This document shows positions 34,201-37,200 of a DNA stretch of 64,000 nucleotides, piece after piece (within the stretch, counting starts at the first letter, position 1; the number at the start of each line of letters is the position of its first letter). The stretch spans positions 139,686,001 through 139,750,000 of the forward strand of contig NC_091291.1 of NCBI RefSeq assembly GCF_032444005.1, read 5' to 3'. Position numbers and translations under genes: made by a program. Below the pieces are notes generated by a model. The model saw only the letters and a list, made by a program, of their open reading frames with translations. It ran no database searches and was not told where the DNA came from. This stretch comes from Ranitomeya imitator. Its lineage: Eukaryota.

Positions 34201-37200
34201 GTTTGAGCAGCATACGATGCGAGCCAAGCACATAGCGGAGGTCCTGCGTCAGATCATGGAGTCGGTGCACGTGGCGGCCCAGGAGCAGAGGTGCGAGTGC
34301 GGCATAGGACCACCTGCGAGGGGTCTCCACCACAGTCCCCTTGTGGCATTTCTGTCATATACGTACTGTATATCCTCCGCAGGGTTTATTGCCTGGAAAA
34401 GCGCGAGATGTTCAGGGACCGACTGGAATTCATCGAGAAGCAGCTGGAACTCCTGACGGAGGATTACAGGATGAAAATCAAGCAGATCACGGACGAGGTG
34501 GAGCGACAGGTGAGAAAGTGAATCGTAAGGGGTGTAACTGAGGAGGGATGGCTGACACGCCGGGTACAGCGACAGGTGAGATAGCGACTCATGTACGGGG
34601 TGTAAATGAGGAGGGATGGCTGACACCCCGGGTGGAGCAACAGGTGAGATAGCGACTCATGTACGGGGTGTAACTGAGGAGGGATGGCTGACACGCCGGG
34701 TAGAGTGACAGGTGAGATAGCGACTCATGTACGGGGTGTAAATGAGGAGGGATGGCTGACACCCCGGGTGGAGCGACAGGTGAGAGTGACTCATGTACGG
34801 GGTGTAAATGAGGAGGGATGGCTGACACCCCGGGTGGAGCGGCAGGTGAGAGTGACTCATGTATGGGGTGTAAATGAGGAGGGATGGCTGACACCCCGGG
34901 TGGAGCGACAGGTGAGAGTTACTCATGTACGGGGTGTAAATGAGGAGGGATGGCTGACACCCCGGGAGGAGCGGCAGGTGAGAGTGACTCATGTATGGGG
35001 TGTAAATGAGGAGGGATGGCTGACACCCCGGGTGGAGCGACAGGTGAGAGTGACTCATGTACGGCGTGTAAATGAGGAGGGATGGCTGACACCCCGGGTG
35101 GAGCGGCAGGTGAGAGTGACTCATGTATGGGCTGTAAATGAGGAGGGATGGCTGACACCCCGGGTGGAGCGACAGGTGAGAGTGACTCATGTACGGGGTG
35201 TAAATGAGGAGGGATGGCTGACACCCCGGGTGGAGCGGCAGGTGAGAGTGACTCATGTATGGGGTGTAAATGAGGAGGGATGGCTGACACCCCGGGTGGA
35301 GCGACAGGTGAGAGTGACTCATGTACGGGGTGTAAATGAGGAGGGATGGCTGACACCCCGGGTGGAGCGGCAGGTGAGAGTGACTCATGTATGGGGTGTA
35401 AATGAGGAGGGATGGCTGACACCCCGGGTGGAGCGGCAGGTGAGAGTGCGACTCATGTACGGGGTTTAAATGAGGAGGGATGGCTGACACCCCAGGTGGA
35501 GCGACAGGTGAGAGTGCGATTCATGTACGGGGTTTAAATGAGGATGTGTAATATCTTGGCTGTTTCAGGTGTCGAACGCCATGGCTGAGGAGATCCGCCG
35601 CCTCTCTGTGCTGGTAGACGACTTCCAGATGGAGTTTCATCCATCCTCTGTTGTCCTTAAAGTTTATAAAAACGTAAGAAACTTTGATTTCCGAGGTCCT
35701 TGTCCCGGAGTCTCTGTCGTCTTGTTACAAATGCTTCTTCTCTCATCCCCCCCCCCCAGGAGCTGCATCGCCACATAGAGGAAGGGCTGGGCAGGAACCT
35801 GTCTGATCGCTGCTCCAGCACCATCTCTGTGTCCCTGCAGACCACGCAGCAGGAGATGATTGGTAAGAAAACACCTCGATTAAATCTCCCACCGTTTTAT
35901 GTGCACAGCTCCTATGCAAAATGATGTGTGGGAGTGCGCGGCACTGGAGAATCCATGTAAGGCTAAGTGGCTTCTCATCCCTCTCTGTGTAGATGGGCTG
36001 TTCCCTCTTCTCCCATCCCCCGCACGTTCCCAGATCGACTTGTTGGTTCCCCGCCAGAGCTTCAGTCTCAGCTACGACCTGAGCTGTGATAAACTTTGCG
36101 CCGACTTCCAAGAAGACGTCCAGTTTCACTTCTCTCTCGGGTGGACGATGCTTGTGAACAGGTTCCTAGGACCCAAGAACGGCCGCAGAGCGCTGATGCC
36201 CTACAACGACCAGGTGGGTGACGCGGCCATCACAGGTCATTGTGCGGTTTGCAGCTTTTTATCGGTTTTAAATCTTATGTGTCACCACTGTCTCCAGATA
36301 CCACGTGCAATGACCCCGGTGAATCCCAGCATGCCCCCAATGCAGCAGGGCGCCATGACTCAGGAGGAACTGATGGTGTCGATGGTGACCGGATTGGCTT
36401 CTTTGACCTCCCGAACATCCATGGGTATTCTGGTGGTGGGAGGAGTGGTGAGTGCTCGGGGGTTGGGGCCATAGTGATGCATGGAGCGTTTCATCCTCCC
36501 TTACATGATGCGGCCTCCTCTTATCCCAGGTCTGGAAGGCCGTGGGCTGGCGGCTCATCGCCTTGTCTTTTGGCCTTTACGGACTCCTCTACGTATATGA
36601 GCGCCTCACATGGACCACGAAAGCGAAGGAAAGGGCCTTCAAGCGGCAATTTGTGGACTACGCAGCTGAGAAACTGCAGCTAATTGTCAGCTACACCGGC
36701 TCCAACTGCAGCCACCAAGTGCAACAGTGAGTGAGACGCATCCGTGCAGAGCTGCAGCCACCAATGTCTCCTCCCCGCCACCAATGTCTCCTCCCCGCCA
36801 CCGATGTCTCCTCCCCGCCACCGATGTCTCCTCCCCGCCACCGATGTCTCCTCTCCGCCACCGATGTCTCCTCTCCGCCACCGATGTCCCCTCCACCGAT
36901 GTCCCCTCCCCCCCCTCCCAGCTGTCATAACCTGCTGTCCTCGCCCCTCACCACCCTTCCTTCCCACCACCCGACTGTCTTTACTTTTCTTACCCCCCCC
37001 CCCCACACTTCCTCTCGCTGGCTGTCGGGACCTGCTCCTTCCCATCCCCTCCAGGCTGTCATGACCTGCTGCCCCAGCATGTATTTTTTGGCCCCAGACA
37101 GGACCTCGCCTCTGTGCCAATATTGTAGTGCATAGTCCTAATCATGTCTTGTGCAGTTTCTGTGCAGCTGTACCCTGTGGACGATTACTAGTCTCTTCTC

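Follow-up and report, generated by a model that had tools for sequence, protein, structure and literature searches.

A minisatellite grown across an exon-intron junction reiterates the 5′ splice site of a mitofusin-2-like gene

Introduction

Mitofusin-2 (MFN2) is needed for mitochondrial fusion, and its loss of function in humans leads to neuropathy; the gene is essential and dosage-sensitive. Given this function and this role in disease, an intron in which the authentic 5′ splice site is followed by 15 perfect decoy splice signals looks alarming. The locus described here raises the question of how such an array came to stand at the end of a coding exon, and of which among 16 identical donors would be used. 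We addressed both points in a 64-kb stretch of genomic DNA, referred to below as the window (the whole stretch that was analysed). The best explanation, to which we assign a probability of roughly 85%, is a lineage-specific minisatellite that arose from a duplicated exon-intron junction, with the authentic donor being used and the decoys silent.

Results

The array lies in a mitofusin-2-like gene

Identification of the host gene was performed exon by exon. The exon at 29700-29864 matched human MFN2 in the PDB (6jfk) with E = 1.4e-28 and 49 of 55 residues identical, while the MFN1 chains in the PDB matched it slightly more weakly (9.5e-26); the same exon scored 36.8 bits with Pfam Dynamin_N. 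The start of Pfam Fzo_mitofusin was recovered on the 50-aa exon at 36298-36447 with 24.7 bits, below the cut-off of 27. Further mitofusin exons were present in the ORF listings from ~28050 to ~37650, with the transmembrane-coding part at ~36400-36600, downstream of the array. The 42-aa exon that adjoins the array (34383-34509) gave no match in PDB or Pfam; it is a short piece, and the Pfam models matching other exons stop short of it. The boundaries of the exons flanking the array are equal to those in an orthologous contig of another vertebrate (L001, see below). Taken together, these matches favour a mitofusin-2-like host gene, with the preference for MFN2 over MFN1 resting on single exons.

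Very short introns of 92, 86, 130 and 84 nt cluster around the array intron (34291-36297). The 84-nt intron at 36214-36297 is open in frame, which results in a mechanical ORF of 191 aa across two exons. A separate 20-bp array of ~7 copies (36757-36909) begins ~30 nt downstream of the donor that closes the exon encoding the transmembrane segment, and that donor is not included in the repeat.

The first repeat unit contains the authentic exon end and donor

TRF reported a single array at 34497-35544 (period 66, 15.7 copies, 94% matches, score 1743), in agreement with the 66-bp minisatellite that the initial annotation had placed at 34498-35545. That annotation had also counted 16 CAG/GTGAGA sites from 34507 onwards (here and below, a slash within a splice site marks the exon-intron boundary), and an exact search returned the same number: the 64-kb window contains the donor sequence CAGGTGAGA exactly 16 times, always on the + strand, with the first copy at 34507 and the last at 35505. 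Dinucleotide-preserving shuffles gave an expectation of 0.82 copies and a maximum of 4. Within the array the donor copies are spaced by 66 or 68 nt. The features of the locus are as follows.

34383-34509, + strand: exon of the mitofusin-2-like gene, 127 nt, by translation; the first base completes a split codon and is followed by 42 codons (VYCLEKRE...)
34507-34515, + strand: authentic 5′ splice site CAG/GTGAGA, with cleavage at 34509/34510; 8 of 9 positions agree with MAG/GURAGU
34519-34521, + strand: in-frame TGA, by translation; the first premature stop for any transcript using a downstream donor
34497-35544, + strand: 66-bp minisatellite of 15.7 copies (TRF, unit table, alignment), covering 13 exonic nt and 1035 of 1059 intronic nt
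34498-34563, + strand: unit 1, 66 bp, with the real exon end and donor; the post-donor AAGTGAATCGTAAGGGG is unique to it, and its identity to the other units is 82-90%
34564-34767, + strand: units 2-4, 68 bp each, of the GTGAGATAGCGACTCATG type; older edge units (unit alignment)
34768-35427, + strand: units 5-14, 66 bp each, arranged as five 132-bp A/B dimers (identity matrix)
35428-35544, + strand: unit 15 (68 bp) and truncated unit 16, of the GTGAGAGTGCGA type; a third subtype at the 3′ edge of the array
35545-35568, + strand: unique intron tail TGTGTAATATCTTGGCTGTTTCAG, likely holding the branch-point region, with a short pyrimidine tract and the acceptor AG
35569-35673, + strand: next exon, 105 nt and 35 codons, by translation; L001 has an orthologous 35-codon exon

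The array starts 13 nt inside the exon, such that unit 1 is made up of the final 12-13 nt of the exon, the donor and the start of the intron. The exon is homologous to the repeat unit over exactly 13 nt (GGTGGAGCGACAG), with the homology continuing into the intron start, and these nucleotides are in register with the array unit, as the earlier reading of a unit opening with the exon's VERQ codons and the donor had proposed. The first monomer spans the exon-intron boundary, and its donor is found unaltered in the downstream monomers as 15 extra copies. The bases ahead of the first donor read …GACGAG GTGGAGCGACAG, and those ahead of the decoy donors read …CCCCGG GTGGAGCGRCAG. The array makes up 98% of the 1059-nt intron, in which only the last 24 nt are unique; the branch point probably lies within this tail, and the acceptor is ctgtttcag/G at 35568/35569. 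The anatomical description that preceded this analysis was right in every detail checked.

Rfam gave no match in the array, either at gathering thresholds (whole window) or at E <= 1 on 34300-35700. At 25261-25313, the site of a proposed intact hammerhead ribozyme core, no hammerhead was found by Rfam at gathering thresholds or at E <= 1 (25100-25500), the only return being a chance-level lncRNA match.

The array might instead stem from a satellite or dispersed element that landed next to the exon and whose likeness to the exon end is fortuitous; dispersed families do account for other arrays in the window, such as the three built from the 86-bp unit described below. However, the 19-mer core of the 66-bp unit was found nowhere in the 64-kb window outside the MFN2 array, the 13-nt match to the exon is perfect and in the exact register of the donor, and the array takes in the exon end itself instead of lying next to it. 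An insertion of this kind is extremely improbable.

The exon end is shared with other vertebrates and the array is derived

The 42-aa exon and the surrounding 76-aa genomic ORF, used as queries in word searches, returned 18 ORFs on genomic contigs of other, distant vertebrates, some of them mammal-like, with identities of at most 76%. All of the word-search matches were genomic ORFs, with no transcript of the same or a close species among them. In 18 of 18 vertebrate ORFs the exon end reads EEVERQ and is followed by a V from the GT.

The contigs of two of the 18 ORFs (L001 and L003) were examined at the exon junction. L001 contains the same 42-codon exon ending in VERQ, the donor CAG/GTAAGT, an intron of 691 nt and the same 35-codon next exon; no tandem repeat was present anywhere in its 11 kb, including the orthologous 691-nt intron. 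The donor of L003 is CAG/GTGAGG, at the same position as the authentic donor. The three junctions (array locus, L001 and L003) align base for base as GTGGAG-G-CAG/GT. Since the exon end is common to other vertebrates, the ancestral sequence comprises the 13 exonic nt with their donor, and the remaining 15 copies are derived; this shared exon end, together with one complete orthologous intron that lacks the repeat, indicates that the array is lineage-specific. On the basis of these alignments, the exon end is judged to be original and the array a derived feature of this lineage.

Diverged edges surround a homogenised core

Alignment of the units revealed layers in register, with diverged edge units (1-4 and 15-16) around a homogenised core (5-14). 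Units 1-4 constitute two dimers, in which AACT/CACGCC alternates with AAAT/CACCCC. In units 5-14 the A and B types alternate between CGACAG..TACGGGG and CGGCAG..TATGGGG, and units of the same type are 94-100% identical. Judged by this divergence, the core units are young and homogenised and the edge units are old. Diverged edges combined with a homogenised dimer core are the usual signature of growth in place by slippage or unequal exchange, and either process probably gave rise to the array.

Tandem arrays are error-prone in assemblies, and an assembler could in principle have made this array or inflated its copy number. No independent copy was recovered by a protein search with the array ORFs, and the exact 44-nt pattern of the unit junction was absent from metagenome contigs, a collection unlikely to hold DNA of this species. 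However, individual units carry private variants (GTTACT in unit 7, GAGGAG in unit 8, GGCG in unit 9 and GGGC in unit 10) and show an ordered gradient from edge to core, both of which are unexpected from a collapsed or stuttered assembly, and the window contains 17 other arrays of similar build. We regard an assembly artefact as highly improbable.

Removal of units 2-16 from the array intron leaves 78 nt, alongside the neighbouring intron lengths given above. We infer that the ancestral intron was short, at ~78 nt, and was blown up thirteen-fold.

Across units 1-15, 20 of 68 alignment columns vary and the nine donor columns are invariant; apart from these nine columns, the unit has just one other long invariant block, which is G-rich and spans 20 nt. 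The chance of nine named columns all being invariant is ~0.03, with the pattern having been noticed after the fact. This gives a mild hint that the donor 9-mer is under constraint or is converted from the real donor, and the invariance may equally be explained by the youth of the core units. It is the sole hint here that the decoys have been kept rather than not yet decayed, and little weight is placed on it.

Open reading frames of 261 aa (+ strand) and of 277 and 167 aa (- strand) occur within the array at 34657-35490, and a gene caller could mistake them for repeat proteins. They exist because the unit length, 66 bp, is divisible by three and the unit is open in three frames. The array was rejected as a coding repeat, the 261-aa ORF being without relatives among 8000 scored candidates.

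Minisatellites are abundant in the window, where 18 arrays occupy 20.8 kb, equal to 33% of its length; within the mitofusin gene span the share is 38%. Since they amount to a third of this sequence, array birth appears to be common in this genome. An 86-bp unit is shared by three arrays, at 31303-32820, 41912-45689 and 46663-48496, with 18, 44 and 21 copies respectively; the first of these is located in an intron of the mitofusin gene and the second runs in reverse orientation, as in a dispersed satellite or element family. A related unit of 22-23 bp (of the CAGAACATCGC / CAGAGCATCGCC type) forms arrays at 12320-13761, 19563-20376 and 57253-58951, on both sides of the gene.

Only the first donor permits an open reading frame

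Reading past the authentic donor gives GTG AGA AAG TGA, with the stop at 34519-34521 exactly as the initial annotation had stated, and further in-frame stops follow in units 2-4. Use of successive donors would lengthen the exon from 127 nt to 193, 261, 329 and so on up to 1125 nt, and would shrink the intron to 993 nt and so on down to 129 and finally 61 nt, the distance between the unit 16 donor and the acceptor. An open frame is possible with the first donor copy only, since each decoy brings in the TGA at 34519. It had been claimed that use of a downstream copy would truncate MFN2 before the transmembrane segment, and this held, as the stops precede the exons at ~36400-36600. With the TGA at 34519 situated several exon junctions before the end of the coding sequence, transcripts from decoy donors should, under the customary 50-55-nt rule, be targets of nonsense-mediated decay (NMD).

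Local sequence does not distinguish the authentic donor

The nine donor bases are identical at every site, so that any nine-base scoring rates the 16 donors equal. RNA structure that would mask the decoys was considered and rejected. In single-unit folds a 5-bp hairpin between GUGAG and CUCAU is available to copies 2-14 and not to unit 1; these folds did not differ significantly from shuffled sequences, with z-scores from -0.95 to +0.93, and local unpaired probabilities calculated with three window sizes gave no advantage for donor 1. The decoy AG/GT sequences were likewise rejected as 3′ or recursive splice sites. They have no upstream pyrimidine tract, with a pyrimidine fraction at -23 to -4 of 0.30-0.40 at all 16 copies compared to 0.60 at the real acceptor, and without such a tract the repeated AG/GT would make poor acceptors or recursive sites.

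The array contains 44 G-runs, or 4.15 per 100 nt, compared to ~1 in the neighbouring introns and in the whole window. Such a density, together with 16 U1-binding sites, could form a positive splicing or transcription element that marks the intron, pushes the choice towards the upstream donor or recruits U1 for other ends. Consistent with this idea, intronic G triplets located between competing donors favour the upstream one (refs 22 and 23 of PMC1557585). However, mutation of the G triplets in F7 itself had no effect (PMC1557585). Moreover, the G-richness at MFN2 follows from the amplification of one G-rich unit, and orthologues lack the array. A positive role of this sort is very unlikely.

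Discussion

A model for the origin and tolerance of the array

The observations are accommodated by a model in which a 66-bp segment across the exon-intron junction, comprising 13 exonic nt and the first 53 intronic nt, would have been tandemly duplicated and then expanded inside a once very short intron. With the 5′ splice site lying within the duplicated segment, such growth would leave 15 extra perfect donors in the intron. The coding sequence would be unharmed provided that splicing proceeds from the most upstream donor. In line with the systems discussed below, the spliceosome is expected to choose the donor that comes first after the 3′ splice site of the exon, through exon definition or 5′-to-3′ scanning, and this choice would yield the normal 127-nt exon. 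Decoy use would then be a small leak at most, likeliest from copy 2, and the resulting transcripts with a premature stop would be cleared by NMD. The same analogues suggest that the decoys are in effect silent.

Weighing against this explanation, the proximity rule of donor choice, observed in vitro, would favour copy 15 (with an intron of 129 nt) over the authentic donor. In the initial annotation the authentic donor had been called 'proximal'; the term is ambiguous, as this donor is the farthest from the 3′ splice site.

While 15 perfect decoys invite concern, the arrangement appears to be a familiar and mostly innocuous consequence of a minisatellite expanding over an exon-intron junction, and it would be tolerated because the spliceosome selects the donor nearest to the exon. 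The host gene is mildly new, as is the strength of the reiterated donor, which agrees with the consensus at 8 of 9 positions, compared to the weak site of F7. Should arrays of this kind recur elsewhere in this minisatellite-rich genome, the species could supply natural substrates on which upstream-first and proximity rules of donor choice can be set against each other.

Comparison with known donor-reiterating minisatellites

The human F7 gene carries in intron 7 a VNTR of 37 bp, present in 5-9 copies, whose first monomer lies across the exon-intron boundary (Borensztajn et al. 2006, PMC1557585). Its pseudo-sites are all functional, and the upstream-most functional one alone is used; in minigenes carrying 1 to 12 monomers, assayed in three cell lines, donor choice was unchanged (PMC1557585). 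The MFN2 array shares with F7 the boundary-spanning first monomer, the identical pseudo-donors after the authentic one and the setting in an essential gene. In contrast, F7 repeats 4 exonic nt and the weak donor UGG/gugggu, whereas the MFN2 array repeats 13 exonic nt and the strong CAG/GUGAGA in 16 copies of a 66-bp unit. By analogy with F7, upstream-first donor choice is likely at the MFN2 array, a likelihood tempered by a donor much stronger than that of F7. The initial annotation had presented the locus as a natural test of how 5′ splice sites are chosen; that test had already been run on F7 IVS7 in 2006 (PMC1557585).

Other systems bear on a different reading, in which the array serves regulated unproductive splicing: decoys would be used, or the 105-nt exon skipped, and a polymorphic array length would determine how much MFN2 is made, by way of NMD or of a deletion that keeps the frame. 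A large leak of this type would be costly, given that MFN2 is essential and dosage-sensitive. The strong 9-mer is nevertheless intact in all 15 decoys and forms one of the two long invariant blocks of the unit, an argument that carries a value of only about p = 0.03 and was examined post hoc. The proximity rule in vitro also speaks for downstream donors. Precedents for pseudo-site use come from intron 2 of IFI6 (6-16) and from CBS IVS13, where the donor is reiterated past the real one 25 times and 15-20 times, respectively, and where splicing also makes constitutive use of the first two pseudo-sites (PMC1557585). Both genes resemble the MFN2 array in having many donor copies downstream of the real one. 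At MFN2, use of copy 2 would add 66 nt with a stop.

The ABCA7 intron 18 VNTR (25 bp) provides evidence on both sides. Longer alleles are associated with reduced expression and more frequent skipping of exon 19, an effect that could be paralleled at MFN2 by length-dependent skipping of the 105-nt exon; however, second-donor use amounts to 2 +/- 1% whatever the VNTR length, and the second-donor transcript is frameshifted and NMD-prone (PMC5954066). The VNTR includes the donor of exon 18, as the MFN2 array includes its donor. Unlike the MFN2 array, which starts inside the exon, that of ABCA7 starts at the GT, and its length ranges from 0.3 to ~10 kb. With decoy use at ABCA7 independent of length and donor choice at F7 constant from 1 to 12 copies, we consider it unlikely that a polymorphic array modulates MFN2 output, whether through decoys and NMD or through ABCA7-like exon skipping. 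Tuning of MFN2 dosage by array length, which had been raised at the outset, is speculation that is unsupported here and would run counter to the best-studied analogues.

For the lineage-specific minisatellite with a used authentic donor, two further loci are relevant. At the LMNB2 and PDGFA minisatellites the authentic donor alone is used (PMC1557585). The human LMNB2 repeat (100 bp, 10-15 copies; de Stanchina et al.) is the closest anatomical match to the MFN2 array, which fills 98% of its intron, with gene, unit and species being different. Judged by its sequence organization, the MFN2 array belongs to the donor-reiterating intronic minisatellites; its build is nearest to that of LMNB2, and its logic is nearest to that of F7 IVS7.
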